From: Paraphysomonas bandaiensis | Taxonomy: Eukaryota > Protista > Chrysophyceae | DNA length: 64,000 bases | Reading direction: 5' to 3' | NCBI GenBank assembly: GCA_965644295.1 | Contig: CBFFRP010000066.1 | Coordinates: 62,001 to 126,000, forward strand | In this document: in pieces, positions 39,875-64,000 of the stretch | Numbering within the stretch: position 1 is the stretch's first letter | How the letters are laid out: every line of letters starts with the position of its first letter | Notes under the pieces: model-generated | Database searches by the model: none | What the model was told of the DNA's origin: nothing | The model's input: only the letters and a program-made list of their open reading frames with translations | Program-made: the position numbers and the translations under genes

Positions 39875-42800
39875 ATGCATATGCATGTGATCATCATTGC
39901 AATCCATGCACTAACCACAGCAGCCCAGACCTATTTGGGTTCTTACAGTACAGCTGATCTTGCCTATGGAGTGTATGTGGTGAATGAGGTGGCGTATGTT
40001 GCCGATGATTGGTCAGGATTGCTGATTATCGATGTGAGTAATTCGACCAACCCATTGCTACTGGGTTCATATGATACACCTGATATTGCCCTTGGGGTGC
40101 ATGTGGTGAATGAGGTGGCGTATGTTGCTGATGGTGCTTCAGGATTGCAGATTGTTAACGTGAGTGATTCGACCAGCCCAGAGCTACTGGGTTCATACGA
40201 TACATCTGGTCATGTCAATGCGGTGTATGTGGTGAATGAGGTGGCGTATGTTGCCGATGGTTATTCAGGATTGCAGATTATTGACGTGAGTGATTCGACG
40301 AGACCATCGCTATTGGGTTCATACGATGTAACTGATGGGGCCGGTGGGGTGTATATGGTGAATGAGGTGGCGTATGTTGCCGTTGATTGGTCAGGATTGT
40401 TGATTATTGACGTGAGTAATTCGACCAACCCATCGCTATTGGGATCTTACGGTACACCTGATATTGCCCTTGGGGTGTATGTGGTGAACGAGGTGGCGTA
40501 TGTTGCCGATGATACTTCAGGATTGCTGATTATTGACGTGAGTGATTCGACCAGCCCATCGCTACTGGGTTCTTACGATACACCTGATATTGCCAAGGGG
40601 GTGTATGTGGTAAATGAGGTGGCGTATGTTGCCGATGGTTATTCAGGATTGCAGATTATTGACGTGAGAGATTCGACGAGCCCATTGCTATTGGGTTCAT
40701 ACGATACACCTCATTTTGCACTTGGGGTGTATGTAGTGAATGAGGTGGCGTATATTGCTGATGGTTGGTCAGGATTGCAGATTATTGACGTGAGTTATTC
40801 AAATCCCTCATCGATTCCCACTTTGACCTACTTGGGTTCTTACAGTACAGTTGATCTTGCCTATGGAGTGTATGTGGTGAATGAGGTGGCGTATGTTGCC
40901 GATGATTGGTCAGGATTGCTGATTATTGACGTGAGTAATTCGACCAACCCATCGCTATTGGGATCTTACGATACACCTGATATTGCCCTTGGGGTGCATG
41001 TGGTGAATGAGGTGGCGTATGTTGCTGATGGTGCTTCAGGATTGCAGATTGTTAACGTGAGTGATTCGACCAGCCCATATCTACTGGGTTCATACGATAC
41101 ATCTGGTCATGTCAATGCGGTGTATGTGGTGAATGAGGTGGCATATGTTGCCGATGGTTATTCAGGATTGCAGATAATTGACGTGAGTGATTCGACGAGA
41201 CCATCGCTATTGGGTTCATACGATGTAACTGATGGGGCCGGTGGGGTGTATGTGGTGAATGAGGTGGCGTATGTTGCCGTTGATTGGTCAGGATTGCTGA
41301 TTATTGACGTGAGTAATTCGACCAACCCATCGCTATTGGGATCTTACGGTACACCTGATATTGCCCTTGGGGTGTATGTGGTGAACGAGGTGGCGTATGT
41401 TGCCGATGATACTTCAGGATTGCTGATTATTGACGTGAGTGATTCGACCAGCCCATCGCTACTGGGTTCTTACGATACACCTGATATTGCCAAGGGGGTG
41501 TATGTGGTAAATGAGGTGGCGTATGTTGCCGATGGTTATTCAGGATTGCAGATTATTGACGTGAGAGATTCGACGAGCCCATTGCTATTGGGTTCATACG
41601 ATACACCTCATTTTGCACTTGGGGTGTATGTAGTGAATGAGGTGGCGTATGTTGCTGATGGTTGGTCAGGATTGCAGATTATTGACGTGAGTTATTCAAA
41701 TCCCTCATCGATTCCCACTTTGCAGCCAACCACGTCGATCCCCTCTTCAATTCCTTCATCGATTCCCACTTTGCAGCCGACCACGTCAATCCCCTCTTCA
41801 ATTCCCTCATCGATTCCCACTCTTCAGCCGACCACGTCAATCCCCTCTTCAATTCCGTCATCGATTCCCACTTTGCAGCCTACCACGTCAATCCCCTCAT
41901 TGATTCCCACTTTTCAGCCGACCACATCTATCCCCACTTCAATTCCCTCATTGATTCCCACTGTGCAGCCAACCACGTCGATTACCTCATCGGTTCCCAC
42001 TTTGCAGCCGACTACGTCGATCCCCTCTTCAATTCCTTCATCTATTCCCACTTTGCAGCCGACCACGTCAATCCCCTCTTCAATTCCTTTGTCGATTCCC
42101 ACTCTTCAGCCGACCACGTCTATCCCCTCTTCAATTCCTTCATCGATTCCCACTTTGCAGCCGACCACGTCAATCCCCTCCTCAATTCCTTCATCGATTC
42201 CCACTTTGCAGCCGACCACATCAATCCCCTCTTCAATTCCTTCATCGATTCCCACTCTTCAGCCGACCACGTCAATCCCCTCCTCAATTCCTTTGTCGAT
42301 TCCCACTTTGCAGCCGACCACGTCAATCCCCTCCTCAATTCCTTTGTCGATTCCCACTTTGCAGCCGACCACGTCAATCCCCTTTTCAACTCCCCCATCA
42401 ATTCCCACTTTGCAGCCAACCACGGCAATCCCCTTTTCAATTCCTTTGTCGATTCCCACTATACAGCCGACCACATCAATCCCCTCCTCAATTCCTTTGT
42501 CGATTCCCACTTTGCAGCCAACCACGTCGATCCCCTCCTCAATTCCTTTGTCGATTCCCACTTTGCAGCCGACCACGTCAATCCCCTCTTTAATTCCCTC
42601 GTCGATTCCCACTTTGCAGCCGACCACGTCTATCCCCTCTTCATTTCCTTTATCGATTCCCACTTTGCAGCCGTCCACGTCAATCCCCTCTTCAATTCCC
42701 TCATCGATTCCCACTCTTCAGCCGACCACGTCAATCCCCTCTTCAATTCCTTCATCGATTCCCACTTTGCAGCCGTCCACGACAATCCCCTCTTCAATTC

Positions 42801-43705
42801 CCTCATCGATTCCCACTCTTCAGCCGACCACGTCAATCCCCACTTCAATTCCTTCATCGATTCCCACTTTGCAGCCAACCACGTCAATCCCCTCTTCAAT
42901 TCCTTCATCGATTCCCACTTTGCAGCCGTCCACGTCAATCCCCTCTTCAATTCCCTCGTCGATTCCCACTTTGCAGCCAACCACGTCAATCCCCTCTTCA
43001 ATTCCCTCGTCGATTCCCACATTGCAGCCAACCACGTCAATCCCCTCTTCAATTCCCTCATTGAGTCCCACAACTCAACCTACCACTTCTGTTCCTACTT
43101 CGCAGCCTACGCTATTTGGCTACAGGGTGTCATCGTATTCTACCCCCCATCCCTATGAAAATTTGGCTACCTATAGTCACAGTTTCTACGAACCTAGCGC
43201 TACTAAAATAAAAGTGCATTTCTCCATGTTCGAAACAGAAGAAGGCTATGATGTGGTTGAACTGATTAACTCTGATGGTGTGATTCAGGAGAGTTATTCA
43301 GGGGCTTTGGGACAATTCGATAGCGCATGGGTCAGTGGAAATGAGGTGAATATTAGACTGGCTACTGATTCCACATATACCTCATATGGATTTGATGTAA
43401 CTGGCTTTACATTTTCTAAAGAGCCGTTAAGTAGTGAGTCAGGCGATGGTGGTGGAAGTGGCAGTATTCGTGGCAATTACTGGTGGTTGTATCTACTGAT
43501 CTTGATACTTCCAATTATCGTTGCTTTTGTTTGTTGCTGTTATTGGTGCAACAATTACCGTAAGAGGCGTCCTGCTGATCATCCTCCTTCCTATACTGAT
43601 GTTCAAATGGTGTCGACTAACACTTCCGTTCCTACTAAAAGTCGACCTGGGCATGACACCTGGGAAGTGGATTTGACAAGCTTTTCATATGAAAATAGCA
43701 TATAG
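39875..43705 (+). CDS. LVIVD receptor A: signal peptide, 14 LVIVD repeats (2x7), ~470-aa P/S/T stalk, CUB, TM, tail
   Basis: 1276-aa intronless ORF; 42-aa repeats (AYVAD..SGLQIIDVS.P.LLGSYDTP); CUB-like TPHPYEN..FETE.GYD..TD..GF; TM WWLYLLILILPIIVAFV. Confidence 0.92.
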   Translation: MHMHVIIIAIHALTTAAQTYLGSYSTADLAYGVYVVNEVAYVADDWSGLLIIDVSNSTNPLLLGSYDTPDIALGVHVVNEVAYVADGASGLQIVNVSDSTSPELLGSYDTSGHVNAVYVVNEVAYVADGYSGLQIIDVSDSTRPSLLGSYDVTDGAGGVYMVNEVAYVAVDWSGLLIIDVSNSTNPSLLGSYGTPDIALGVYVVNEVAYVADDTSGLLIIDVSDSTSPSLLGSYDTPDIAKGVYVVNEVAYVADGYSGLQIIDVRDSTSPLLLGSYDTPHFALGVYVVNEVAYIADGWSGLQIIDVSYSNPSSIPTLTYLGSYSTVDLAYGVYVVNEVAYVADDWSGLLIIDVSNSTNPSLLGSYDTPDIALGVHVVNEVAYVADGASGLQIVNVSDSTSPYLLGSYDTSGHVNAVYVVNEVAYVADGYSGLQIIDVSDSTRPSLLGSYDVTDGAGGVYVVNEVAYVAVDWSGLLIIDVSNSTNPSLLGSYGTPDIALGVYVVNEVAYVADDTSGLLIIDVSDSTSPSLLGSYDTPDIAKGVYVVNEVAYVADGYSGLQIIDVRDSTSPLLLGSYDTPHFALGVYVVNEVAYVADGWSGLQIIDVSYSNPSSIPTLQPTTSIPSSIPSSIPTLQPTTSIPSSIPSSIPTLQPTTSIPSSIPSSIPTLQPTTSIPSLIPTFQPTTSIPTSIPSLIPTVQPTTSITSSVPTLQPTTSIPSSIPSSIPTLQPTTSIPSSIPLSIPTLQPTTSIPSSIPSSIPTLQPTTSIPSSIPSSIPTLQPTTSIPSSIPSSIPTLQPTTSIPSSIPLSIPTLQPTTSIPSSIPLSIPTLQPTTSIPFSTPPSIPTLQPTTAIPFSIPLSIPTIQPTTSIPSSIPLSIPTLQPTTSIPSSIPLSIPTLQPTTSIPSLIPSSIPTLQPTTSIPSSFPLSIPTLQPSTSIPSSIPSSIPTLQPTTSIPSSIPSSIPTLQPSTTIPSSIPSSIPTLQPTTSIPTSIPSSIPTLQPTTSIPSSIPSSIPTLQPSTSIPSSIPSSIPTLQPTTSIPSSIPSSIPTLQPTTSIPSSIPSLSPTTQPTTSVPTSQPTLFGYRVSSYSTPHPYENLATYSHSFYEPSATKIKVHFSMFETEEGYDVVELINSDGVIQESYSGALGQFDSAWVSGNEVNIRLATDSTYTSYGFDVTGFTFSKEPLSSESGDGGGSGSIRGNYWWLYLLILILPIIVAFVCCCYWCNNYRKRRPADHPPSYTDVQMVSTNTSVPTKSRPGHDTWEVDLTSFSYENSI

Positions 43706-43914
43706 TAGAGTTGTCATAAGAATTCTTCTGGGGCCATAAGCATAATATAGTAATTACTTTGGCATGTTATCATGTATATTGAAAGTCTTATTATATAGCA
43801 ATAGGCATTAAAAAAATGCACCAATGTAGTGGCTAGTTGAATGCTAGACAGACTACCCACAACTAATCAGTACACACTTTTTTATCCTACTTTTTAACGC
43901 TACGGAAGCTGCTG

Positions 43915-44077
43915 CAATGGAATTCAGGTTGGGAGCCAAACTCTAAATAAGCTAAAACTCGCTCTAACAGAGAGAATGCTGCTTATTATGAACTTATACT
44001 ACTTCTGCAGTACTAAATGCTTCTCGGCACCCCAAGAAACTAAAGCACAACTCACCAGCTATGCAGTTCAGTACTAA
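43915..44077. repeat. ~160-bp repeat also present at 49655-49826
   Basis: GAGCCAAACTCTAAATAAG...GTTCAGTACTAA is essentially identical in both places. Confidence 0.85.
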
Positions 44078-44261
44078 CTAATGGTAGTCCAGTTCCCGGT
44101 AATTATAATGGCATTAATGAAAAATGTCCCGGCAATTATAATGGCAATTAATGGCCATTAATACCTACTAACTTAATGTAGATAGCACCACTCATATAAT
44201 AGATAGTGTTGTGCTCCCTTAATTACTAATTTGTAGTTAAATAGCAGACTACAAACTTTAA

Positions 44262-44795
44262 CTACTTCTCGTTCTCTACTGGCACATCAGGATCTTCTTG
44301 CAGGGCATTATGGAGGGTATAAACACCCCACAACATATAATTGGCTCGTAGGGATAGCAACGATTCTAGACGACATGGATTCATGTTTCTACGCTCAGGT
44401 GTCATACTCAACTTTGCACGACTAAAGAGCCTCTCAACAACATTAGAATGTGCTTCACTATGAAGCAAGCAGCGGTAGTTGTACTCATAGGTACCAAGTC
44501 GAGCTCTCTTGGTGACCTCGGCGCTGTCCAGAACACGCTGTGCAAAATCAGTTCCTTCACTCTCGTCCTCGTTATTTCTGTCGGGTACACCAACCTTCAT
44601 GGATGAATCCAGTTGCAAATGTCTAACTGCTCTTCTTTCATTGCCTGTCAACTCTCTTTCATCGTTCCCTTGAATTTTGGCCACTGCCTTCTCAAAAATT
44701 TCACTGGCAACAATGCTTGCGTTCAGGGAAAGGTATGGATGCAGCTCTGGAAATTCTTGTAGCAGCATATCAAATAACTGGCGGGCTTGGTACAA
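44262..44795 (-). pseudogene. hAT transposase C-terminal fragment (dimerisation domain)
   Basis: SNVVERLFSRAKLSMTPERRNMNPCRLESLLSLRANYMLW; the catalytic core upstream is missing or degenerate. Confidence 0.8.
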
Positions 44796-45201
44796 ATTGA
44801 TTCCATCTCTTCCGAATATACTTATTCTCTACAATAGAAAATGGTTCGTCGTTCATGACTATCCATTCCAACCACCGAAATAAGTTCCTTGAAGCAGGAG
44901 AGACTTTCTTACAAAAGACAATAAATCGCCCCTGTGAATTCTTTCACATCTCAAAAATCTCTCAAGTTTCCTTTTGTCAACAAAAATCCGCATGTTTGAT
45001 GCTCTTGGCTGTATGGTTCACACAAGTCGCGTAACCTCGCCATATATTCTGATACAGAAGATTCACTGAATCCACTCGGAAGAAGACTCTGTAAATTACA
45101 TTGCCATCAAATTGTTTTAGCCATCGTCGTTACTTAATATGCTGGATGGTATACAGCACAGAGCATCATCATATACTTCGTACTGCAGCTTCTTTCAACT
45201 G

Positions 45202-45346
45202 CGTATCGGCATCCTTTGTATTTTTTTGTTCCAATATGCCTCTATTATTGAGACAACAACTATCTGTATTCTAGCCGTAATTGTATTGCAGTAATATAGA
45301 AAAATTTTGCTTCAATTTATTTCCGAAGAAAATGACAGCCCATACG
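45202..45346. mobile_element. MITE family A, copy 3
   Basis: CGTATCGGCA...CCCATACG; flanked by TG/TG. Confidence 0.75.
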
Positions 45347-45383
45347 TGTATATTTCGTACGAGTGATGACCACAATTCACTGT

Positions 45384-45533
45384 CCTATTGGGATCATTTG
45401 TGTTTTTGTTGAAAGATGCCTCAAATATTGAGACAATAATTATCTGTATTCCAGCCGTAGTTATATCTCAGTGATATAGAGGATATTTGCTTCAATTTAT
45501 TTCCGCAAAAATAAGATGATGAATGCCCATACG
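45384..45533. mobile_element. MITE family A, copy 4
   Basis: Same internal sequence; flanked by GT/GT. Confidence 0.7.
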
Positions 45534-45929
45534 GTAGAGAAGAGAAAGGTCAAAAATCATAAAAAAAAACATGAAAAAGTGTCTTTTACATTTAATTCCA
45601 TAACTTTTTAATTTCAGCAATCGAAATACTGCGGTTTTAACACGAAATAGCCCATTAAATGCTGAACATTTCGCAGCATTACCAACACACATGAAAACCT
45701 CTCATTTATAGAAAATCAACCAGTTTCTAGATTTATGATAATATAAATACGTTAAAACTTGAGAAACTAAAAATACGTTAAACTTATAAATATCTAGATT
45801 TACTAGTAAAATACCCTATTTTACCCCTCGGTGTACCACCCTGATTTCTCCATATCTAGAGAGACTGTCATACTGCGTGATTCCACGTGGAACTACTGTC
45901 CGCTAACTTGAACTTGTCAAAACCATAAT

Positions 45930-48212
45930 ATGGATATGCATGTGATCATCATTGCAATCCATGCACTAACCACAGCAGCCCAGACCTACTTGGGTTCTTA
46001 CTATACACGTGATGCTGCCAATGAAGTGCATGTGGTGAATGAGGTGGCGTATGTTGCCGCTAGTTATTCATTGCAGATTATTGATGTGAGTAATTCGACC
46101 AACCCATATCTATTGGGATCTTACGATACACTTCATACTTTATTTGCGGGGATATATGTGGTGAATGAGGTGGCGTATGTTGCTGCTTCTAGAGCAGGGT
46201 TGTATATTTTTGACGTGAGTGATTCGACCAGCCCATTGCTATTGGGCTCTTACGATACACCTGATCGTGCCGGGGAGGTGTATGTGGTGAATGAGGTGGC
46301 GTATGTTGCCGATAATTGGTCAGGATTGCAGATTATTGACGTGAGTGATTCGACCAGCCCATTGCTATTGGGCTCTTACGATACACCTGATTATGCCCGT
46401 GGGGTGTATGTGGTGAATGAGGTGGCGTATGTTACTGATAGTGCTTCAGGATTGCTGATTATTGACGTGAGTGATTCGACTAGCCCATTTCTATTGGGTT
46501 CTTACGATACACCTCGTTATGCCGATGGGGTGTATGTGGTGAATGAGGTGGCGTATGTTGCCGATGATACTTCAGGATTGCTGATTCTTGATGTGAGTGA
46601 TGCGACCAGCCCATTGCTGTTGGGTTCTTACTATACACCTGCTACTGCCCTTAACGTGTATGTGGTGAATGAGGTGGCGTATGTTGCCGATCATTTTTCA
46701 GGATTGCAAATTATTGACGTGACATCGATTCCCACTTTGCAGCCGACCACGTCAATCCCCTCATTGATTCCCACTTTGCACCCGACCACGTCAATGCCCT
46801 CTTCATTTCCCTCATCGATTCCCACTTTGCAGCCGACCACGTCAATCCCCTCATCGGTTCCCACTTTGCACCCGACCACGTCATTCCCCTCATCATTTCC
46901 CTCATTGATTCCCACTTTGCAGCCGACCACGTCAATCCCCTCTTCAACTCCCTCATCAATTCCCACTATACAGCCGACCACATCATTCCCCTCTTCAACT
47001 CCCTCATCAATTCCCACTTTGCAGCCGACCACGTCAATCCCCTCTTCAAACCCCTCATCGATTCCCACTATACAGCCAACCACATCAATCCCTTCTTCAA
47101 TTCCCTTGTCGATTCCCACTTTGCAACCAACCACGTCAATCCCCTCTTCAATTCCTTCATCGATTCCCACTTTGCAGCCGACCACGTCATTCCCCTCTTC
47201 ATTTCCCTCATCTATTCCCACTTTGCCGCCAACCACGTCATTCCCCTCTTCAATTCCCTCATCGATTCCCACATTGCAGCCAACCACATCAATCCCTTCT
47301 TCAATTCCTTCGTCGATTCCCACTTTTCAGCCAACCACGTCAATTCCCTCTTCAACTCCCTCATCGATTCCCACTTTGCAGCCGACCACGTCAACCCCCT
47401 CCTTAAATCCCTCATTGAGTCCCACAACTCAACCAACGACGTCAATGCCCTCTTCAACCCCCTCATCGATTCCCACTTTGCAGCCGACCACGTCAATCCC
47501 TTCTTCAATTCCTTCATCAATTCCCACTTTTCAGCCGATCACATCAATTCCCTCTTCAATTCCCTCATCGATTCCCACAACTCAACCAACCACTTCTGTT
47601 CCTACTTCGCAGCCTACGCTATTTGGCTACAGGGTGTCATCGTATTCTACCCCCCATCCCTATGAAAATTCGGCTACCTACAGCCACAGTTTCTACGAAC
47701 CTAGCGCTGCTAAAATAAAAGTGCATTTCTCCACGTTCGAAACAGAAGAGGACTATGATGTGGTTGATCTGATTAACTCTGATGGTGTGATTCAGCAGAG
47801 TTATTCAGGGGCTTTGGGACAATTCGATAGCACATGGGTTAGTGGAAATGAGGTGAATATTAGACTGGCTACTGATTCCACATATACCTCATATGGATTT
47901 GATGTAACTGGCTTTACCTTTTCTAAAGAGCCGTTAAGTAGTAAATCAGGCGATGGCGGTGGGAGTGGCAGTAGTCGTGGCAATTACTGGTGGCTGTATC
48001 TACTGATTTTGATACTTCCAATTATTGTTGCTTTTGTTTTTTGCTGTAATTGGTGCAACAACTACCGTAAGAGGCGTCCTGCTGATCATCCTCCTTCCTA
48101 TACTGATGTTCAAATGGTGCCAACTAACACTTCCGTTCCTACTAAAAGTCGACCTGGGCATGACACCTGGGAAGTGGATTTGACAAGCTTTTCATATGAA
48201 AATAGCATATAG
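45930..48212 (+). CDS. LVIVD receptor B: 6 repeats, ~300-aa stalk, CUB, TM, tail
   Basis: 760-aa intronless ORF with the same architecture as A. Confidence 0.92.
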   Translation: MDMHVIIIAIHALTTAAQTYLGSYYTRDAANEVHVVNEVAYVAASYSLQIIDVSNSTNPYLLGSYDTLHTLFAGIYVVNEVAYVAASRAGLYIFDVSDSTSPLLLGSYDTPDRAGEVYVVNEVAYVADNWSGLQIIDVSDSTSPLLLGSYDTPDYARGVYVVNEVAYVTDSASGLLIIDVSDSTSPFLLGSYDTPRYADGVYVVNEVAYVADDTSGLLILDVSDATSPLLLGSYYTPATALNVYVVNEVAYVADHFSGLQIIDVTSIPTLQPTTSIPSLIPTLHPTTSMPSSFPSSIPTLQPTTSIPSSVPTLHPTTSFPSSFPSLIPTLQPTTSIPSSTPSSIPTIQPTTSFPSSTPSSIPTLQPTTSIPSSNPSSIPTIQPTTSIPSSIPLSIPTLQPTTSIPSSIPSSIPTLQPTTSFPSSFPSSIPTLPPTTSFPSSIPSSIPTLQPTTSIPSSIPSSIPTFQPTTSIPSSTPSSIPTLQPTTSTPSLNPSLSPTTQPTTSMPSSTPSSIPTLQPTTSIPSSIPSSIPTFQPITSIPSSIPSSIPTTQPTTSVPTSQPTLFGYRVSSYSTPHPYENSATYSHSFYEPSAAKIKVHFSTFETEEDYDVVDLINSDGVIQQSYSGALGQFDSTWVSGNEVNIRLATDSTYTSYGFDVTGFTFSKEPLSSKSGDGGGSGSSRGNYWWLYLLILILPIIVAFVFCCNWCNNYRKRRPADHPPSYTDVQMVPTNTSVPTKSRPGHDTWEVDLTSFSYENSI

Positions 48213-49402
48213 TAGAGTTGTCATAAGAACTCTTCTGGAGCCACAAGCATTCTTCAGCCATCACAATATATATGTATATAATAATTTCTTTTTAAACCAT
48301 TTTATATATATTTTCTTACTATACACATTCCAGAGCTTAAAGCATATTCGCCATTATATCACTACAACTACATTCCAGAGCTTAAAGCATCGCCATTATA
48401 CATTATATTATTTAGTAGCTTTTATGGTCGTAGAATCCGGGTTTCTTACAACCTCTACAAATTTAAATTATTTTTCATTTTATTTTTTCCCTTCCCCGAC
48501 TTCTACCATTAACACTACCTTTTAAATCTACTTTACTATCTATATTACTTTTTTATTATAACAATATAAATAATATATAAAGTAATTTATTTTATTATAA
48601 GAATACAAATAATATATAAAGTAATTAAGTTATTAATAATAAGATATAAAGTTAAATTAGCAAGGAGAGATAATTACAACCGCAAAGCTTGCGGTTGTAA
48701 TTGGAAACTCTCGAAGAGAAGAAGCCCCCTTGGGGGTTTGGGGGTTAAAAGGCTTGTCCTTGTCTTCCTCCCTTCGTTTTTTTATCTCATCTTTGCAATC
48801 ACAACATTGTTTTCAGCAACTGGTCTCTGCTATGTACCTCACAGTGAGTTCAGGAGCTCTCCATAACTGCGAATTTTGATGCAGGACAACAATTGCAATC
48901 TTACAAGCAAATTTCCACCAAAAGTTGTGGAAGTTGGACTCCACACCTCCAGAATAGCATGTTCTATTGGTAACCCACAGTGTTTATGTGGTATGTCTCA
49001 ATGCTTGAGCACATGATTGACATATGGAGGGGACCTTAACCTACAGTATGAAACTGTGTGGAATACGGTGTCTGGAATGGGAAATAAACTGAAAAAAACT
49101 TCCTAGAGTTTTCTCCGCCACTAGAAGTGCTTTAGTGGCTGGAGCTGTGCAGATGAGGAGAGGAGGATTCGAAGATATGAAGTGAAGTGAAGTGAGAAGT
49201 ACAGAACTTCACTTTATATACAGTCAGAATACCATAAAATACGTAGAAGGTTAAGATACTAGTGGAACACCCAACTCACTCCTCGAGCTCAGCTGACCAG
49301 CCTGATGTGGATAGTCCGCCATTCCATCACTGCACTCGGAGACCTTCATAGTCAGTCATACTATGGAACTATACGCAGACTTGAACTTGTCGAAACCATA
49401 AT

Positions 49403-49655
49403 ATGCATATGTATGTTATCATCATTGCAATCCATGCACTAACTGCAGCAGCCCAGAGCTACTTGGGTTCATACGATACACCTCATTATGCCCGTGGGGT
49501 GTATGTAGTGAATGAGGTGGCGTATGTTGCCGATAATTGGTCAGGATTGCAGATTATTGACGTGAGTGATTCGACCAACCCATTCCTATTGGGTTCTTAC
49601 ATAGATCTGGTGTTGCGAAGGGGGTGTGGTGAATGAGGTAGCGTATGTTACCTAT
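49403..49655 (+). pseudogene. LVIVD receptor C, truncated after about 1.5 repeats
   Basis: Signal peptide plus one repeat, a frameshift near 49625, then fusion to the 160-bp repeat. Confidence 0.85.
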
Positions 49656-53189: not shown

Positions 53190-53290
53190 AGGGCTCTTAT
53201 GTATCTCTGTGGGTTCTTATATATCTATATGGGCTCTTATGTATCTCTGTGTTCTCTTATGTATCTCTATGGGCTCTTATGTTTCTCTAT
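53190..53290. repeat. 20-bp minisatellite (GGGCTCTTATGTATCTCTRT) x5
   Basis: Directly visible. Confidence 0.85.
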
Positions 53291-54695: not shown

Positions 54696-54941
54696 TGGAT
54701 ATTGAGAAAAGTGCGCAGGTAAAAAACCAACACTGGCAAACTAAATGAACTACCAAAAAACCCTACCTTTTTCTATACCTTCGTACAAGTACCTACCCAT
54801 AATTTGTAGGTTTTTAGGTCTCGAGCACACATCTGGAATCCAAAACTTAATTTTTTTAACAATTAGAATACAATAAAATACATGAAATCTTAGATACTAG
54901 TAAAATACCCCTACTTTACCCCTCGGTGTAACACCCTGTCA

Positions 54942-55092
54942 CGAATCGGCAGAAAGTATCTTATTTTTCGGAAATAAAATGAAGCGAATATTCTCTATAT
55001 AATTGCATATCAACTACGGCTGGAATACAGATAATTGTTGTCTCAATATATGAGGCATTTCTGAACAAAAATATACAAAGGATACTGATACG
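54942..55092. mobile_element. MITE family A, copy 6, in the upstream region of LVIVD gene E
   Basis: Flanked by CA/CA. The empty site CTGTCATACTG is present in the paralogous upstream regions of A (~39810) and B (~45865). Confidence 0.85.
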
Positions 55093-55153
55093 CATACTGC
55101 ATTATTGCACGTGGAACTACCATCCGCTAACTTGAACTTGTCAAAGCCATATT

Positions 55154-56731
55154 ATGCATATGTATGTTATCATCATTGCAATCCATGCACTAACCACAAC
55201 AGCCCAGAGCTATTTGGGTTCTTACGATACATCTGGCCAAGCCTTTGGGGTGCATGTGGTGAATGAGGTGGCGTATGTTGCTGATGGTTATTCAGGATTG
55301 CAGATTGTTAACGTGAGTGATTCGACCAACCCATCGCTATTGGGTTCATACAATACACCTGACCTTGCCCGTGAGGTATATGTGGTGAATGAGGTGGCGT
55401 ATGTTCCCGATTATTCTTCAGGATTGCAGATTATAGACGTGAGTGACTCGACCAGCCCATCGCTACTGGGTTCATATGATACACCTGGTGATGCCAATGG
55501 GGTGTATGTGGTGAACGAGGTGGCGTATGTTGCTGATGCATCTTCAGGATTGCAGATTATTGACGTGAGTGATTCGACCAGCCCATTGCTACTGGGTTCT
55601 TACGATACACCTGGTGGTGCCAATGGGGTGTATGTGGTGAATGAGGTGGCATATGTTGCCGATGGTTCTTCAGGATTGCAGATTATAGACGTGAGTAATT
55701 CGACCAACCCATTGTTATTGGGTTCTTACGATACACCTGATATTGCCCGTGAGGTATATGTGGTGAATGAGGTGGCGTATGTTGCCGATGATTCTTCAGG
55801 ATTGCAGATTATTGACGTGAGTGATTCGACCAGCCCATTGCTATTGGGCTCTTACGATACATCTGGTAGTGCAAAGGGGGTGTATGTGGTGAATGAGGTA
55901 GCGTATGTTACTGATGGTTATTCAGGATTGCAGATTGTTGACGTGAGTGATTCGACCAGCCCATCGCTATTGGGTTCTTACGATACACCTGGTAGTGCCG
56001 AGGGGGTGTATGTGGTGAATGAGGTGGCGTATGTTGCCGATTATACATCAGGTTTGTGGATTTTTAACATTTTGTTGAATCCTACAATTCCCTCATCGAG
56101 TCCCACAACTCAACCAACCACTTCTGTTCCTACTTCGCAGCCTACTCTTTTTGGCTACAGGGCGTCACCGTATTCTACCCCCCATCCCTATGAAAATTCG
56201 GCTACCTACAGCCACAGTTTCTACGAACCTAGCGCTGCTAAAATAAAAGTGCATTTCTCCATGTTTGAAACAGAAGAGGACTATGATGTGGTTGATCTGA
56301 TTAACTCTGATGGTGTGATTCAGGAGAGTTATTCAGGGGCTTTGGGGCAATTCGATAGCACATGGGTTAGTGGAAATCAGGTGAATATTAGACTGGCTAC
56401 TGATTCCGAATATACCTCATATGGATTTGATGTAACTGGCTTTACCTTTTCTAAAGAGCCGTTAAGTAGTGAGTCAGGCGATGGCGGTGGGAGTGGTAGT
56501 AGTCGTGGCAATTACTGGTGGTTGTATCTACTGATTTTAATACTTCCAGTTATTGTTGCTTTTGTTTGTTTCTTTTATTGGTGCAACAACTACCGTAAGA
56601 GGCGTACTGCTGATCATCATCCTTCCTATACTGATGTTCAAATGGTGTCAACTAACACTTTCGTTCCTACCAAAAGTCGACCTGGGCATGAAACCTGGGA
56701 AGAGGATTTGATCACGTTTTCTTATGAATAG
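55154..56731 (+). CDS. LVIVD receptor E: 7 repeats, very short stalk (~22 aa), CUB, TM, tail
   Basis: 525-aa intronless ORF. Confidence 0.92.
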   Translation: MHMYVIIIAIHALTTTAQSYLGSYDTSGQAFGVHVVNEVAYVADGYSGLQIVNVSDSTNPSLLGSYNTPDLAREVYVVNEVAYVPDYSSGLQIIDVSDSTSPSLLGSYDTPGDANGVYVVNEVAYVADASSGLQIIDVSDSTSPLLLGSYDTPGGANGVYVVNEVAYVADGSSGLQIIDVSNSTNPLLLGSYDTPDIAREVYVVNEVAYVADDSSGLQIIDVSDSTSPLLLGSYDTSGSAKGVYVVNEVAYVTDGYSGLQIVDVSDSTSPSLLGSYDTPGSAEGVYVVNEVAYVADYTSGLWIFNILLNPTIPSSSPTTQPTTSVPTSQPTLFGYRASPYSTPHPYENSATYSHSFYEPSAAKIKVHFSMFETEEDYDVVDLINSDGVIQESYSGALGQFDSTWVSGNQVNIRLATDSEYTSYGFDVTGFTFSKEPLSSESGDGGGSGSSRGNYWWLYLLILILPVIVAFVCFFYWCNNYRKRRTADHHPSYTDVQMVSTNTFVPTKSRPGHETWEEDLITFSYE

Positions 56732-58501
56732 TAGAGTTGTCATAAGAATTCTTCTGGAGCCATAGGCATTAGTTTTTATGTTTGTTAGTAACAGTTTCAT
56801 AAAAAGGAAAAAGACATTATGAGAGTACTACTGACTGATACTCATGCTGTACACAATTATTGCTTGTTGTAATATTATAATTACCATCACGATTGTGATC
56901 CCTTGACCACTTACTCTGTTAGTGACGAAGTTATTACCGTCACCAAAATATGTGGCACTATACATGCCATAAATGATGTTGTTCTTGCTCACTGCGTTTG
57001 ATTTGAGCGATAGAGCGAAAGCGGTGACGCACAAGCAGCTTTCGTAGCGTTAAACAGTAGAATATCTGAGATAAGCACTGACTCTTAAACGCCTATTGCT
57101 AATAATAAGACATTCACTTCTGAGGAGATAAGGTGTTTGTAATAGTGTTGCTGTTATTTAGTTTATAGTTTGAGTTAGCTGAACATAATTATAAGTTGAT
57201 ACGAAGAGAACAATACATTACGGAATACTGCATTGCTGTTTAGTATTCAGTACAGCTGCAGTACTTAACGTGGGGTATCTAGCGGGATATCTAGTATCTA
57301 TATGCATCTATATGGCTAACAGAGTTCATAATAGAATTAAACAGAAATGCTTAGATCTACTAGAGTAAACAATTTCCTATACACACTGACTGCATCTTGA
57401 GTATCAGAGTCATGCAGCAGAAGTTGTCTCGGTGTAAGATCGGAACTTCTTATATGCCACATACGGCAGAGTAACTGCTGCGTAAGTGTTCTGGATTGAG
57501 AGTAATGCTCTTAGGGTGCAATGCGCAGGTAATCAACACTGGCCAACGGTGGTGCCCCATCCAGAGCTAGACTTCCAGCGACTCGCCAGGTATGGTAGAT
57601 ATGAAACATCTACGTGTATATTACACCCCCCTATATGGTGACATGAAAGGTGGATGTAGCCGCTACAAGGCTGCTGCAGAGAAGGTTCAGGAACTGGTTC
57701 AGAAGCACTTTTCTATTGAGGTTCACCTGCTGGCAGTAACTGTGTATGTGATGGTACCGTACCTGTGATCCTGTGCTTCTAAGCCACTCGTTCATACATA
57801 CATCAACCCTCTTGCTATCATCTCAGCTCAGTAATCACAGAGTGCGAAGGGTACAGTTGGGATTGCATCATATACCACCGTAAAGTATGAACACCCCCGT
57901 ATACATGCACAGCAGTATATCCATATGATTCTACGAGTACGAAGTGTGGTATTACAAACCCCTGTTTTTATTTGATTGTGTTATTGGAAATCCCTGTTTT
58001 TAAAATTGAGCGAAGTGTGTTTCTGGAAACCCCTGTTTTTATTGGATTGTGTTATTGGAAATCCCTTTTTTTGTAGGATCACCCATACAAACAACAGCGA
58101 TTTTGAGATTTCTCGAAACTACGAGAAGTTGGTGAAATTTCAGTTTTTCAATGCTAATAACAGCACAACATCTCGTACAACGCTGTATGTACTGAAGTGT
58201 TTAGTGGCTGTAGCTGTGCAGATGGGGAGAGAAGGCTTCGAAGATATGAAGTGAAGTGAAGTGAAGTGAAGTGAAGTGAGAAGTACAAAACTTCACTTTT
58301 TATACAGTCAGAATACCATAAAATACGTAGAAGGTTAAGATACTAGTGGAATCAGAACATGCAGAACCCCCAACACACTCCTCGAGCTCAGCTGACCAGC
58401 CTGATGTGGATAGTCCGCCATTCCATCACTGCACTCGGAGACCTTCATAGTCAGTCATACTGTGGAACCATACGCAGACTTGAACTTGTCGAAACCATAA
58501 T

Positions 58502-60811
58502 ATGCATATGCATGTGATCATCATTGCAATCCATGCACTAACCACAGCAGCCCAGACCTACTTGGGTTCATACGATACACCTCATCTTGCCATTGATGTG
58601 CATGTGGTGAATGAGGTGGCGTATGTAGCTGATGGTTCTTCAGGATTGCTGATTATCGATGTGAGTGATTCCACCAGCCCATCGCTACTGGGCTCTTACG
58701 ATACACCTGGTTATGCCGAGGGGGTGTATGTACTGAATGAGGTGGCGTATGTTGCTGATTGGTATTCAGGATTGCAGATTATTAATGTGAGTGATTCGAC
58801 CAGTCCATCTCTACTGGGTTCATACGATACACCTGGTATTGCCAATGCGGTGTATGTGTTGAATGACGTGGCGTATGTTACTGATGGTGCTTCAGGATTG
58901 CAGATTATTAACGTGAGTGACTCGACCAGCCCATTGCAACTGGGTTCTTACGATACACCTGGTAGTGCCCGTGGGGCGTATGTGGTGAATGACATGGCGT
59001 ATGTTGCCGATTATACCGCAGGATTGCTGATTATTGACGTGAGTGATTCGACCAACCCATTGCTCTTGGGTTCTTACGATACACCTCATACTGCCTTTGG
59101 GGTGTATGTGGTGAATGACGTGGCGTATGTTGCTGATGCATATTCAGGATTGCTGATTATTGACGTGAGTGATTCGACCAGTCCGTTGTTATTGGGTTCT
59201 TACGATACACCTTATGAGGCCTTCTGGGTATATGTGGTGAATGAGGTGGCGTATGTTGCTGATGCATCTTCAGGATTGCAGATTATTGACGTGAGTGATT
59301 CGACCAGCCCATATCTATTGGGTTCATACGATACACCTCATTTTGCATTTGTGGTGCATGTGGTGAATGAGGTGGCGTATGTTGCTGATGGTTATTCAGG
59401 ATTGCAGATTATTGCCGTGAGCGATTCAATTCCGTCATCGATTCCCACTTTGCAGCCAACCACGTCAATCCCCTCTGCAATTCCTTCAGAGATTCCTACT
59501 TTGCAGCCGACCACATCTACCCCCTCTTCATTCCCCTCTTCAATTCCCTCATCGATTCCCACTTTGCAGCCAACCACGTCAATCCCCTCTTCAATTCCCT
59601 CATCGATTCCCACTTTGCAGCCAACCACGTCAATCCCCTCTGCAATTCCTTCAGAGATTCCTACTTTGCAGCCGACCACGTCGATTCCTTCATCGGTTCC
59701 CACTTTGCAGCCAACCACGTCAATTCCCTCATTGTACCCCACTTTGCAGCCAACAACGTCAATTCCCTCATGGGTTCCTTCATCGATTCCTACTGTTCAG
59801 CCGACCACGTCATTCCCCTCTTCATTTCCCTCATCTATTCCTACTTTGCAGCCAACCACGTCAATCCCCTCTTCAATTCCGTCATCGATTCCCACTTTGC
59901 AGCCAACCACGTCAATCCCCTCTGCAATTCCTTCAGAGATTCCTACTTTGCAGCCGACCACGTCAATCCCCTCTTCAATTCCTTCATCGATTCCTACTCT
60001 TCAGCCGACCACGTCAATCCCCTCTTCATTTCCCTCATCGATTCCTACTTTGCAGCCGACCACCTCAATTCCCTCATCGATTCCCACTTTGCAACCGACC
60101 ACCTCAATCCCCTCTTCAATTCCCTCATCGATTCCCACTTTGCAGCCTGCCACATCACTTCCCTCATCGAGTCCCACAACGCAGCCTACCACTTCTCTTC
60201 CTACTTCGCAGCCTACGCTATTTGGCTACAGGGCGTCACCGTATTCTACCCCTCATCCCTATGAAAATTTGGCTACCTATAGCCACAGTTTCTACGAACC
60301 TAGCGCTGCTAAAATAAAAGTGCATTTCTCCATGTTCGAAACAGAAGAGGACTATGATGTGGTTGAACTGATTAACTCTGATGGTGTGATTCAGCAGAGT
60401 TATTCAGGGGCTTTGGGACAATTTGATAGCACATGGGTTAGTGGAAATCAGGTGAATATTAGACTGGCTACTGATTCCACATATACTTCATATGGATTTG
60501 ATGTAACTGGCTTTACCTTTTCTAAAGAGCCGTTAAGTAGTGAGTCAGGCGATGGCGGTGGGAGTGGTAGTAGTCGTGGCAATTACTGGTGGTTGTATCT
60601 ACTGATTTTAATACTTCCAGTTATTGTTGCTTTTGTTTGTTTCTTTTATTGGTGCAACAACTACCGTAAGAGGCGTACTGCTGATCACCCTCCTTCCTAT
60701 ACTGATGTTCAAATGGTGCCAACAAACACTTCCGTTCCTACCAAAAGTCGACCTGGGCATGACACCTGGGAAGTGGATTTGACGAGCATTTCATATGAAA
60801 ATAACATATAG
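58502..60811 (+). CDS. LVIVD receptor F: 7 repeats, ~265-aa stalk, CUB, TM, tail
   Basis: 769-aa intronless ORF. Confidence 0.92.
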   Translation: MHMHVIIIAIHALTTAAQTYLGSYDTPHLAIDVHVVNEVAYVADGSSGLLIIDVSDSTSPSLLGSYDTPGYAEGVYVLNEVAYVADWYSGLQIINVSDSTSPSLLGSYDTPGIANAVYVLNDVAYVTDGASGLQIINVSDSTSPLQLGSYDTPGSARGAYVVNDMAYVADYTAGLLIIDVSDSTNPLLLGSYDTPHTAFGVYVVNDVAYVADAYSGLLIIDVSDSTSPLLLGSYDTPYEAFWVYVVNEVAYVADASSGLQIIDVSDSTSPYLLGSYDTPHFAFVVHVVNEVAYVADGYSGLQIIAVSDSIPSSIPTLQPTTSIPSAIPSEIPTLQPTTSTPSSFPSSIPSSIPTLQPTTSIPSSIPSSIPTLQPTTSIPSAIPSEIPTLQPTTSIPSSVPTLQPTTSIPSLYPTLQPTTSIPSWVPSSIPTVQPTTSFPSSFPSSIPTLQPTTSIPSSIPSSIPTLQPTTSIPSAIPSEIPTLQPTTSIPSSIPSSIPTLQPTTSIPSSFPSSIPTLQPTTSIPSSIPTLQPTTSIPSSIPSSIPTLQPATSLPSSSPTTQPTTSLPTSQPTLFGYRASPYSTPHPYENLATYSHSFYEPSAAKIKVHFSMFETEEDYDVVELINSDGVIQQSYSGALGQFDSTWVSGNQVNIRLATDSTYTSYGFDVTGFTFSKEPLSSESGDGGGSGSSRGNYWWLYLLILILPVIVAFVCFFYWCNNYRKRRTADHPPSYTDVQMVPTNTSVPTKSRPGHDTWEVDLTSISYENNI

Positions 60812-62869
60812 TAGAGTTGTCATAAGAATTCTTCTGAGCCATAAGCATCAGTTTAAATGCTTGTTAGTAACAGGTTCATAAAAAGGAAAAGACATTATGA
60901 GAGTACTACTGACTGATACTCATGCTGTACACAATTATTGCTTACTGTAATATTATAATTACCATCACGATTGTGAATTGTGACCCCTTGACCACTTACT
61001 CTGTTGGTGACGAAGTTGGAAAATTTTAATTTTGGCCCTTTTTGGCCCTCGGCCCGCATTTGGCCCTCTACTACAACTAACAATAATAACAATAATTCTT
61101 AATTAAAAACACACATAACACACACTACAACTACAAGCAACAATAACGCACAAAGCAAAGGGCAGTATTACGCACAAAGCAAAGGGTCAAATTTAGCAAG
61201 AGTTATTAATATCTTAAGCAAGAGCAACTTTTTTACCAAAACATTTTTCGGGGCTGGGGGCTCCACACGCTTCGAGTCTACGAGCCGGCGTCCACTGCCC
61301 CCAGGCCCCCGCCCCTAAACAACGCCGGGGCGCCTGAGCCCTGCCGGCGGCAATACAGCATGTCTCAATAGCATGAATCCTTACATCACAAGACATAACT
61401 GACGGATACGCAACCACCAAAAAACCTCATAGGACAAACCGGTGGACGTATGACTCCGACGTTTCAGCAAGTCTCACCATAGGCAACACATCTGAAAGAT
61501 CTTCTGTCTCTGATAATAGCACGTATGATTTCGTATCCTCGTCACTGAGATCAATCACACCACATCATTCAACTTCAACGCTAAGTCGCGAGCACCCTGG
61601 CTGTCAGGAAGAATGGAGTGGGTTAGGGTTAGCGGATGGAATATTTGACCAGTCCACCAATCAATATATTGTACAATGTATTGCAATACAATATATTATT
61701 CCCTATCCCTGGGGTAAACTATTTCCTATACACACTGACTGCATCTTGTGTATCAGAGTCATGCAGCAGAAGTTGTCTCGGTGTAAGATCGGAACTTCTT
61801 ATATGCCACATACGGCAGAGTAACTGCTGCGTAAGTGTTCTGGATTGAGAGTAATGCTCTTAGGGTGCAATGCGCAGGTAATCAACACTGGCCAACGGTG
61901 GTGCCCCATCCAGAGCTAGACTTCCAGCGACTCGCCAGGTATGGTAGATATGAAACATCTACGTGTATATTACACCCCCTATATGGTGACATGAAAGGTG
62001 GATGTAGCCGCTACAAGGCTGCTGCAGAGAAGGTTCAGGAACTGGTTCAGAAGCACTTTTCTATTGAGGTTCACCTGCTGGCAGTAACTGTGTATGTGAT
62101 GGTACCGTACCTGTGATCCTGTGCTTCTAAGCCACTCGTTCATACATACATCAACCCTCTTGCTATCATCTCAGCTCAGTAATCACAGAGTGCGAAGGGT
62201 ACAGTTGGGATTGCATTATATACCACTATATTGTCATCTTCTACACTGGCCCGTAAAGTATGAACACCCCCGTATACATGCACAGCAGTATATCCATATG
62301 ATTCTAGTACGAAGTGTGGTATTACAAACCCCTGTTTTTATTGGATTGTGTAATTGGAAACCTCTGTTTTTAAAATTGAGCGAAGTGTGTTTCTGGAAAC
62401 CCCTGTTTTTATTTGATTGTGTTATTGGAAATCCCTGTTTTTGTAGTATCACCCATACAAACAACAGCGATTTTGAGATTTCTCGAAACTACGAGAACTT
62501 GGTGAAATTTCAGTTTTTCAATGCTAATAACAACACAACATTTCGTACAACGCTGTGTTACTGAAGTGTTTAGTGGCTGTAGCTGTGCAGATGAGGAGAG
62601 AAGGCTTCGAAGATATGAAGTGAAGTGAAGTGAAGTGAAGTGAAGTGAGAAGTACAAAACTTCACTTTTATACAGTCAGAATACCATAAAATACGTAGAA
62701 GGTTAAGATACTAGTGGAATCAGAACATGCAGAACCCCCAACACACTCCTCGAGCTCAGCTGACCAGCCTGATGTGGATAGTCCGCCATTCCATCACTGC
62801 ACTCGGAGACCTTCATAGTCAGCCATACTGTGGAACCATACGCAGACTTGAACTTGTCGAAACCATAAT

Positions 62870-64000
62870 ATGGATATGCATGTGATCATCATTGCAATCC
62901 ATGCACTAACCACAGCAGCCCAGACCTACTTGGGTTCATACGATACACCTCATCTTGCCATTGATGTGCATGTGGTGAATGAGGTGGCGTATGTAGCTGA
63001 TGGTTCTTCAGGATTGCTGATTATCGATGTGAGTGATTCCACCAGCCCATCGCTACTGGGCTCTTACGATACACCTGGTTATGCCGAGGGGGTGTATGTA
63101 CTGAATGAGGTGGCGTATGTTGCTGATTGGTATTCAGGATTGCAGATTATTAATGTGAGTGATTCGACCAGTCCATCTCTACTGGGTTCATACGATACAC
63201 CTGGTATTGCCAATGCGGTGTATGTGTTGAATGACGTGGCGTATGTTACTGATGGTGCTTCAGGATTGCAGATTATTAACGTGAGTGACTCGACCAGCCC
63301 ATTGCAACTGGGTTCTTACGATACACCTGGTAGTGCCCGTGGGGCGTATGTGGTGAATGACATGGCGTATGTTGCCGATTATACCGCAGGATTGCTGATT
63401 ATTGACGTGAGTGATTCGACCAACCCATTGCTCTTGGGTTCTTACGATACACCTCATACTGCCTTTGGGGTGTATGTGGTGAATGACGTGGCGTATGTTG
63501 CTGATGCATATTCAGGATTGCTGATTATTGACGTGAGTGATTCGACCAGTCCGTTGTTATTGGGTTCTTACGATACACCTTATGAGGCCTTCTGGGTATA
63601 TGTGGTGAATGAGGTGGCGTATGTTGCTGATGCATCTTCAGGATTGCAGATTATTGACGTGAGTGATTCGACCAGCCCATATCTATTGGGTTCATACGAT
63701 ACACCTCATTTTGCATTTGTGGTGCATGTGGTGAATGAGGTGGCGTATGTTGCTGATGGTTATTCAGGATTGCAGATTATTGCCGTGAGCGATTCAATTC
63801 CGTCATCGATTCCCACTTTGCAGCCAACCACGTCAATCCCCTCTGCAATTCCTTCAGAGATTCCTACTTTGCAGCCAACCACGTCAATCCCCTCTGCAAT
63901 TCCTTCAGAGATTCCTACTTTGCAGCCGACCACGTCGATTCCTTCATCGGTTCCCACTTTGCAGCCAACCACGTCAATTCCCTCATTGTACCCCACTTTG
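62870..64000 (+). CDS. LVIVD receptor G (partial; runs off the window), a recent duplicate of F
   Basis: ATG at 62870 (MDMHVIII...), open to the window end; not listed in the ORF track. Confidence 0.9.
   Translation, partial: MDMHVIIIAIHALTTAAQTYLGSYDTPHLAIDVHVVNEVAYVADGSSGLLIIDVSDSTSPSLLGSYDTPGYAEGVYVLNEVAYVADWYSGLQIINVSDSTSPSLLGSYDTPGIANAVYVLNDVAYVTDGASGLQIINVSDSTSPLQLGSYDTPGSARGAYVVNDMAYVADYTAGLLIIDVSDSTNPLLLGSYDTPHTAFGVYVVNDVAYVADAYSGLLIIDVSDSTSPLLLGSYDTPYEAFWVYVVNEVAYVADASSGLQIIDVSDSTSPYLLGSYDTPHFAFVVHVVNEVAYVADGYSGLQIIAVSDSIPSSIPTLQPTTSIPSAIPSEIPTLQPTTSIPSAIPSEIPTLQPTTSIPSSVPTLQPTTSIPSLYPTL

Follow-up and report, generated by a model that had tools for sequence, protein, structure and literature searches.

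Plant clusters of the Cf-4/Cf-9 type consist of tandem genes for type I receptors with extracellular leucine-rich repeats (LRRs) and short tails. In these receptors, hypervariable exposed residues lie on a conserved frame, and unequal recombination changes the number of repeats and exchanges them. In Podospora, the WD40 repeats of the HET-D/E/R and HNWD proteins possess selected codons at repeat positions 7/9 and 25/27, located in the d-a loop and the b-c turn on the top face of the propeller (PMC1805685). Concerted evolution of these repeats was argued from repeats shared across loci (PMC1805685), which is the line of argument that we follow below. Further, the diatom surface protein ISIP1 comprises a signal peptide, a seven-bladed propeller, an O-glycosylated stalk, a transmembrane (TM) segment and a short tail with an endocytosis motif (PMC3491386, PMC5955625). 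Here we analyzed a 64-kb window (the whole stretch of 64,000 nucleotides, positions 62,001 to 126,000 of contig CBFFRP010000066.1 of Paraphysomonas bandaiensis), which harbors a cluster of genes encoding propellers of LVIVD repeats on predicted membrane-anchored stalks.

Very little is known about how diatoms recognize bacteria, viruses, parasites and mates at the cell surface. A full-text literature search for "LVIVD" brought up no paper that treats LVIVD receptors of eukaryotes or hypervariable blades of this repeat. We show that four codons of each 126-bp repeat unit accumulate replacement changes in excess of silent ones while the remainder of the unit is conserved, and we consider it probable that the family is a set of stalked surface proteins that present a variable propeller face for the diversifying binding of biotic partners.

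Positions under diversifying selection in the LVIVD blades

We extracted 98 blades in register from all members of the family in the genome, 85 of which were unique at the DNA level. The preliminary description of this DNA had reported a near-invariant 42-residue framework with variation at five positions (X1-X5), which correspond to unit positions 10, 11, 13, 27 and 28. Most frame positions indeed showed an entropy below 1 bit, and all six of the residue combinations quoted in that description were found in the extracted blades. The entropy peaked at X2-X5 (3.4 bits at position 11, 3.2 at 13, 2.6 at 27 and 3.1 at 28). X1 was only moderately variable (2.0 bits at position 10, mainly G/D/H), and positions 1 (2.3 bits), 41 (2.1 bits) and 14 (1.8 bits) varied as well. 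Positions 11 and 13 flank a conserved Ala. Tyr, Gly, Ser, Arg and Asp are frequent among the variable residues.

The nucleotide diversity at codon bases 1, 2 and 3 was 0.59, 0.63 and 0.29, respectively, at the codons of X1-X5, compared with 0.20, 0.13 and 0.29 elsewhere; bases 1 and 2 of the variable codons thus change approximately twice as fast as base 3. When replacement (dN) and silent (dS) changes were counted using the Nei-Gojobori method, dN/dS was 3.7-4.3 at positions 11, 13, 27 and 28, where dN was 1.13 compared with 0.23 for dS in the frame. The frame gave a ratio of 0.34-0.47, and positions 1 and 41 one of 1.0-1.2. The contrast between loop and frame was stronger still within a single gene, that on contig C319. 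Comparison of site models M2a and M1a (our own implementation, using an IQ-TREE tree) yielded a likelihood ratio test statistic of 150, with an omega of 3.5 for 17% of sites. In the strictest pooled test, in which the silent rate of the class itself is used, beta/alpha was 1.9 for the four codons (p = 0.017) and 0.8 for position 10 alone. M2a also called positions 1 and 41 as selected. We rejected this call because the counting and pooled tests gave a dN/dS of approximately 1 together with a high dS at these positions, which we take to be unconstrained linker sites. The site-wise check that had been proposed for X1-X5 therefore gave a dN/dS above 1 at X2-X5 using three methods, but not at X1. 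We concluded that X2-X5 are under diversifying selection and that X1 is not.

Predicted fold and location of the variable residues

The proteins of the family matched LVIVD (Pfam PF08309) with E values from 8.6e-39 to 1.8e-101 in 5-14 stretches per protein (cut-off 20.2 bits). For CUB (Pfam PF00431; cut-off 21.4 bits), whole proteins scored 21-24 bits and the domain taken by itself 27.1 bits. When a profile of the CUB subgroup was compared with the PDB, the matches included cubilin (6.7e-18), neuropilin-1 (2.5e-11) and MASP (1e-10). The domain is without cysteine and hence without the two metazoan disulfides, as are its bacterial relatives, and we therefore class it as a genuine CUB domain that belongs to the cysteine-less bacterial subgroup. 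The conserved Tyr, Glu and Asp in the CUB alignment presumably correspond to the CUB calcium site. The N-terminus carries 18 hydrophobic residues and is signal-like. The CUB domain is followed by a Gly/Ser linker, a TM segment of 24 residues, the sequence YRKRR and a tail of approximately 50 residues, which hardly differs from one paralogue to the next and includes the sequences PPSY and YTDV. In aligned segments, the CUB-TM-tail region of g5 was 94% and that of g1 90% identical to that of g4 at the protein level, in agreement with the earlier statement that these parts are almost unchanged between genes. As judged from these features, the proteins are probably secreted, adopt a type I topology and carry O-glycans on the stalk.

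An AlphaFold2 model of g4, built using 60 aligned sequences, showed a propeller at residues 19-306 with a predicted local distance difference test score (pLDDT) of about 98. It comprised 28 strands in seven units, with four strands per 42-residue unit. The model further contained a CUB-like sandwich (pLDDT 55-77) and a TM helix at residues 455-482. A Foldseek search using this model detected seven- and eight-bladed propellers (E 1e-12 to 1e-9) and a phosphotriesterase of Sphingobium, which was also a weak match at the sequence level.

In the modeled unit, the strands span positions 1-6, 12/14-18, 21-26 and 30-35. Positions 7-13 form the loop joining strands 1 and 2, and positions 27-29 form that joining strands 3 and 4; by topology, the 19-20 turn and the 36-42 connection belong to the opposite face. 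Because the antiparallel meander places both variable loops opposite the exit of the chain, these loops would face away from the stalk, and positions 11, 13, 27 and 28 are predicted to share one face of the propeller opposite the stalk exit.

In 17 of the 85 blades, unit positions 35 and 38 are polymorphic for Asp and Asn in a way that gives rise to NVS or NST sequons. These sequons, at unit positions 35-40, sit opposite the variable loops, and only one sequon lies elsewhere in a blade. N-glycosylation of the stalk-side face may therefore differ between blades.

Duplication and exchange of blades

The paralogues possess 6, 7, 8, 11 or 14 blades. Gene g1 is an internal 7+7 duplication with 98.2% identity between its halves (39928-40825 vs 40825-41722); its seven-blade sets are parted by a five-residue insert, which is a copy of the start of the stalk. 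Blades 3 and 4 of g3 are nearly identical, and the blades of g6 are identical to those of g5. In g7, which lies beyond the window, blades 1-4 are the same as in g5, and blade 5 is a second copy of blade 1; its total of 11 blades is not divisible into sevens. A unit of 4.26 kb is triplicated (g5, g6 and g7) with 98.5% identity (59539-63795 vs 63793-68054). Both g5 and g6 are preceded by a tandem repeat of 32 bp and by a (TGAAG)n microsatellite, which belong to this unit (Table 1).

The distance between frames was 0.110 within genes and 0.118 between genes. The first and last blades were most closely related to blades in the same position of other genes, unlike the inner blades. Equal frame distances within and between genes together with the orthology of end blades are what unequal recombination would be expected to produce. 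Blades with frames 1-4% apart differed at 5-8 of the eight variable residues. Further, frames one base apart were found in a CUB-type gene of the contig that carries the cluster (C66) and in a gene of contig C152 with an EGF-like C-terminus. Because near-identical frames sit on unrelated tails, heads or single blades have been moved or copied between loci.

Contigs assembled from four runs were short in the repeats (100-400 bases) and cannot separate alleles, strains and paralogues. Thus, apparent differences in loop codons among them, such as that at 55237-55240, may stem from paralogues.

Bacterial and metagenomic relatives

Searches of a large protein database with the propeller detected bacterial LVIVD proteins only, and these matched the propeller alone. 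The bacterial heads were 50-59% identical over the propeller (52-57% where about half of the query was covered), and the closest named ones were cyanobacterial. These relatives are secreted surface proteins, and the loop positions are the least conserved columns of bacterial LVIVD proteins generally. The identity of blades within a protein was 0.68-0.76 in the cluster, about 0.40 in a metagenomic relative described below and on average 0.50 in 86 bacterial homologues. However, uniform blades (0.73-0.84 identical) were also found in the bacterial proteins most similar to the heads of the cluster, P0011, P0040 (Microcystis), P0071 and P0097 (Dolichospermum), among which cyanobacterial proteins of the DUF4347-LVIVD(-RTX) type are prominent, and their blades vary at unit positions 10/11, 13, 27 and 28. 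In P0011, P0071 and P0097, dN at the four codons was 0.73-2.7 versus a frame dS of 0.09-0.24, in small samples of four or five blades each. The design of a conserved frame with variable loops is clearly not unique to this host. The preliminary description had called it convergent with the fungal proteins; this word does not fit well, because the head looks inherited from bacteria and cyanobacterial LVIVD proteins have the same design. Three bacterial loci (L038:3001-5136, L039:301-1842 and L040:1-2689) encode LVIVD proteins with near-identical blades, two of them of cyanobacterial type with DUF4347 and RTX. Their blades vary at the same four positions in the loops, where replacement divergence is far above the silent divergence in the frame. 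These proteins look like an undescribed class of diversifying bacterial surface proteins.

An exhaustive search using the C-terminal module detected 732 relatives of the CUB part. Those examined came from bacteria and were either proteins with several CUB domains or M4 metallopeptidases that carry type IX secretion tails (46-80 bits), and the nearest CUB relatives were bacterial with 30-40% identity. A word-based protein search using the CUB-TM-tail region gave no match, and the TM-tail part matched no database protein other than fragments of the family itself (P0121 and P0140). LVIVD and CUB occurred together in none of 275 sampled proteins.

A scan of metagenome contigs using the C-terminal module detected one weak extra locus only. 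The exhaustive search led to a metagenomic relative (L034-L036) with eight LVIVD blades, a stalk that is rich in PT and several hundred residues long, a TM segment and a different tail; its CUB domain shares 46% identity with that of the cluster. The blades of this relative are approximately 40% identical to each other. Because it combines the same architecture with ordinary divergent blades, the architecture predates the uniform blades of the cluster. The locus (L034:3433-6879, JGI sample 3300073652) is eukaryote-like, and a prokaryotic gene caller had split the gene into many small false genes.

Organization of the cluster

The cluster lies on a 553-kb contig of a eukaryotic assembly of 62.6 Mb in 669 contigs. 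Six uninterrupted open reading frames (ORFs) of the family (g1-g6) are co-oriented on the + strand from 39.8 kb to the end of the window (Table 1). The full layout comprises a signal-like N-terminus, 6-14 LVIVD blades, a Pro/Ser/Thr stalk of 28-477 aa, a CUB domain, a TM helix and the conserved tail. Inside the window, this layout is complete in g1, g2, g4 and g5 only. The preliminary description had counted seven co-oriented, intronless paralogues with the full layout in each. The common orientation and the single ORFs were evident, and the genes appear to be intronless as judged from their open frames; the count became six genes plus a fragment of 74 codons, with g6 cut by the end of the window, and g3 ends after eight blades.

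Table 1. Features of the LVIVD cluster. Coordinates are positions within the 64-kb window; window-equivalent positions continue past its end.
Feature	Position	Strand	Remarks
g1, 1276 aa	39875-43705	+	signal-like N-terminus 39875-39928; 14 blades 39929-41686
g1, C-terminal parts			stalk 41687-43117 (477 aa); CUB 43118-43423; TM 43478-43549; tail 43550-43702
177-aa ORF	44262-44795	-	between g1 and g2; no Pfam match
g2, 760 aa	45930-48212	+	6 blades 45984-46718, two with single-residue indels
g2, C-terminal parts			stalk 46719-47624 (302 aa); CUB 47625-47930; TM 47985-48056; tail to 48209
N-terminal gene fragment, 74 codons	49403-49624	+	signal-like peptide and one blade
g3, 365 aa	50513-51610	+	signal-like peptide and 8 blades, then stop
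High-copy dispersed element	54900-55098; 56890-57287		on both sides of g4
g4, 525 aa	55154-56731	+	7 blades 55208-56068; used for the structure model
g4, C-terminal parts			stalk 56069-56152 (28 aa); CUB 56153-56458; TM 56513-56584; tail 56585-56728
32-bp tandem repeat; (TGAAG)n microsatellite	57945-58072; 58247-58279		upstream of g5
g5, 769 aa	58502-60811	+	7 blades 58556-59416
g5, C-terminal parts			stalk 59417-60223 (269 aa); CUB 60224-60529; TM 60584-60655; tail to 60808
32-bp tandem repeat; (TGAAG)n microsatellite	62315-62442; 62616-62648		upstream of g6
g6	62870 to past window end (64000)	+	in the genome to window-equivalent 65062; open frame of 737 aa
g8	window-equivalent 72733-74741		split over two reading frames

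Gene g3 is without stalk, CUB and TM, and no CUB match was found downstream of it; it encodes either a secreted soluble propeller or a truncated pseudogene. The 74-codon fragment shares a copied upstream region with g5 (49120-49649 vs 58191-58753, 85% identity) and is probably a pseudogene remnant. Tandem arrays of 126 bp with 81-88% matches were detected by Tandem Repeats Finder in every gene, and arrays of a 51-bp stalk repeat in all genes except g3, which has no stalk, and g4, which has a stalk of 28 aa.

The cluster extends past the window with g7 (L028:3111-6089; 11 blades) and then g8, whose C-terminus is unlike CUB-TM and whose two-frame split reflects either a frameshift or an intron. 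Four more members lie on contigs C149, C430, C152 and C319. Those on C430 (L031:3732-5444) and C152 (L032:4984-6723), as well as g8, carry the same uniform LVIVD head followed by a PT linker and an EGF-like C-terminus (teneurin-type EGF). A genome-wide LVIVD scan detected 94 blade matches, all above the cut-off and confined to five contigs, at approximately 13 loci. The "combinatorial repertoire" of the preliminary description is therefore modest, with about 95 blades, rather than large.

The genes upstream of the cluster in the window are ordinary eukaryotic genes (lysine methyltransferase, BTB, kinases, thioesterase and SET), and the genome contains at least seven silicon-transporter loci. 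The C-terminal part of the 177-aa ORF presumably resembles the dimerization region of hAT transposases. In the DNA runs (two organism labels), the contig depth was 1e4-1e5 at the two copies of the high-copy element around g4, compared with approximately 1e2 nearby, and numerous loose contig ends lie beside the high-depth stretch (57021, 57078 and 57118). Parts of the window recur in marine metagenomes. Contigs from a polyA-selected marine metatranscriptome cover 56164-56728 (the CUB-TM-tail region of g4) with differences of 1-6%, and they derive from g4 or from a paralogue close to it. These contigs are weak evidence of transcription.

Discussion

The patterns described above support a role in diversifying surface recognition. 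In the mechanism that we propose, a rigid LVIVD propeller head would be held off the membrane by a Pro/Ser/Thr stalk of the O-glycosylation type in a type I protein, and the stalk would lead into the CUB domain, a single TM helix and a short cytoplasmic tail that is conserved. The strand 1-2 loop (positions 11 and 13) and the strand 3-4 loop (positions 27 and 28) would together form the face that points away from the cell. Recent amplification and recombination among the 126-bp units would keep the frames of the blades near-identical within and between loci, and would also alter the number of blades and shift them between genes. The four loop codons gain replacement changes faster than silent ones. 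The outcome would be a small set of receptors or adhesins with differing binding faces. The most probable targets are biotic partners, such as bacteria of the phycosphere, viruses, parasites or mating partners, because of the type of selection, the birth and death of genes and the presence of the same head on EGF-like tails. Prey, which had been listed among the possible targets, were judged unlikely on the premise that the host is a phototrophic diatom.

Several points weigh against this interpretation. The family is small. In a site-by-site likelihood test similar to fixed effects likelihood (FEL; our own code, with site-specific dS), only position 11 of the four variable positions reached p<0.05, although a single codon per site leaves this test with little power; it picked out position 12 as well, owing to the low silent rate there. 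The strictest pooled test reached only p = 0.017, and dS at the variable codons was approximately twice that of the frame. Recombination among short repeats can inflate site-model tests, and we therefore give most weight to the model-free contrasts. The placement of the variable residues on one face follows from strand topology and not from measured distances. Further, the short contigs cannot show differences between strains in the order of blades, and the triplication with 98.5% identity could partly be an effect of assembly.

The genes might instead encode endocytic receptors for nutrients or for scavenging that are built like ISIP1, with paralogues for different ligands and a tail that drives uptake. 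The propeller would then bind small nutrients, abiotic or microbial, for example vitamins or complexes of siderophores with metals. CUB domains of cubilin act in endocytic ligand capture, and the nearly invariant tail contains PPSY and YTDV, which may resemble the sorting motifs PPxY and YxxPhi. Further, the layout of ISIP1, which mediates siderophore uptake, is similar (PMC3491386, PMC5955625). However, the D/ExxxL motif of ISIP1 is missing from the tail, and the excess of replacement over silent changes in the loop codons, the birth and death of genes and the truncated copies would be expected in biotic conflict or mate recognition more than in nutrient receptors. We regard a role in uptake as unlikely, although it is the main alternative.

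We consider it rather improbable that the proteins are structural adhesives or glycoproteins of the cell covering (mucilage, frustule-associated proteins or gliding adhesins), in which the propeller would serve as a scaffold and loop variation would be a side effect of weak constraint combined with homogenization of the frame. The mucin-type stalks of very uneven length (28-477 aa), the secreted bacterial surface proteins among the relatives and the low conservation of the loop columns across bacterial LVIVD proteins are in line with such a role. Weak constraint, however, gives a dN/dS of approximately 1, as at positions 1 and 41 (1.0-1.2), and not 1.9-4.3 as at the four loop codons, and plain relaxed constraint was rejected on this basis. 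Homogenization without selection would moreover wipe out differences between loops, whereas blades with near-identical frames differ at most of their loop residues.

Programmed hypermutation of the loop codons by a mutator resembling a diversity-generating retroelement (DGR), or by another targeted mutator, is very improbable. The third base of the four variable codons is T in 84% of cases, compared with 38-46% elsewhere in these genes, and their first two bases are scrambled; NNY codons are the outcome of the adenine mutagenesis that is typical of retroelement-driven systems. However, the third base is no more diverse in the variable codons than in the frame (0.286 vs 0.286). Recent duplicates are identical in their loop codons as well: blades 1-4 of g5, g6 and g7 do not differ there, and the halves of g1 match at positions 10, 11, 13, 27 and 28. 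Variation is found in every blade of every gene rather than in one pair of variable region and template. Further, there is no reverse-transcriptase ORF in the cluster; the sole other intergenic ORF of at least 150 aa (177 aa) is without a Pfam match, and the remaining three ORFs of at least 150 aa lie inside family genes, over the repeat arrays. The identical loop codons of recent duplicates, the unraised third-base diversity and the lack of a reverse transcriptase thus argue against programmed hypermutation. The NNT pattern agrees with young repeats in which bases 1 and 2 undergo intense replacement change. From an NNT codon, no stop codon can be reached via changes at bases 1 and 2, and we speculate that avoidance of stop codons, as second-order selection, favored the preference for T endings at fast-changing sites, unless this preference is due to chance.

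An artefact of assembly or contamination, in which repeats were collapsed or expanded or bacterial DNA was included, might be suspected from the length and likeness of the repeats, the 4.26-kb unit shared by g5-g7 at 98.5% and the exclusively bacterial relatives of head and CUB, but is scarcely credible, because the genes lie on a 553-kb contig amid ordinary eukaryotic genes (kinases, SET, BTB and lysine methyltransferase), the heads are fused in frame to a stalk, TM and tail of eukaryotic style, paralogues lie on four other contigs, and the family recurs in independent DNA runs and in a metagenomic relative. Bacterial contamination was rejected on these grounds.

A diversifying surface-recognition family may be part of a wider picture. 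Propellers of near-identical LVIVD blades could be a diversifying scaffold across kingdoms, with the same four loop codons of each blade driven to change in cyanobacteria and in this host under a uniform frame. In that case the host would have taken head and CUB from bacteria, mounted them on a eukaryotic mucin stalk, TM and a tail for signaling or sorting, and would use the cluster as a surface repertoire that resembles innate immunity or discriminates between partners, directed at bacteria, viruses or mates; we offer this as a tentative and rather doubtful proposal. The recurrence of the design in cyanobacterial surface proteins points to a general and transferable route to binding diversity. 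The cluster is a small and well-defined candidate receptor family, and the interpretation predicts that specificity is determined by four residues in each blade, located on the face distal to the membrane.

Relation to described receptor families

Among metazoan CUB receptors (cubilin, neuropilin and MASP/C1r), the domain finds its counterpart by profile as a true CUB, but that of the cluster is without disulfides and is present as a single copy between a mucin stalk and the membrane. Unlike bacterial LVIVD proteins, which are secreted or of type IX secretion system (T9SS) or RTX type, the cluster proteins possess a mucin stalk, CUB, TM and cytoplasmic tail. By description, the only level at which the two were compared, the layout resembles that of ISIP1: a signal peptide, a seven-bladed propeller, an O-glycosylated stalk, one TM and a short tail with sorting motifs. 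ISIP1, however, is a conserved gene with a cysteine-rich center and no recognizable repeat family, whereas the cluster is multi-copy, with a cysteine-free head of LVIVD repeats, a CUB domain and diversifying selection. The Cf-4/Cf-9-type clusters differ in that they are built on an LRR solenoid instead of an LVIVD propeller, belong to another lineage and have a known role in pathogen recognition in plants.

The parallel with HET-D/E/R drawn in the preliminary description proved to be close. In common with HET-D, HET-E, HET-R and HNWD of Podospora, the family is built of 42-aa propeller repeats with high conservation of their DNA sequence (PMC1805685), and in both systems four selected codons form two pairs in two loops (here 11/13 and 27/28), which lie on one face in Podospora and are predicted to do so here. 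In both, the number of repeats varies, repeats are exchanged between loci, and pseudogene loci retain intact repeats (PMC1805685). In contrast to the Podospora proteins, which are cytoplasmic NOD-like receptors (NLRs), those of the cluster are predicted to be extracellular and membrane-anchored, and their repeat is LVIVD rather than WD40 and of bacterial origin; repeat-induced point mutation (RIP) is not applicable. A Pfam search detected no NACHT, HET or NB-ARC domain, and thus no such effector architecture, in any member. The family therefore appears to work like the fungal repeat type but is no member of the NLR family. The logic of conserved frame, selected loops and repeat exchange is already known from fungal NLRs and from plant LRR receptor clusters; the scaffold, the predicted extracellular setting and the bacterial origin are new. 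The present results thus extend conserved repeats with few selected loop codons from cytoplasmic fungal NLRs to a predicted extracellular propeller of bacterial origin.

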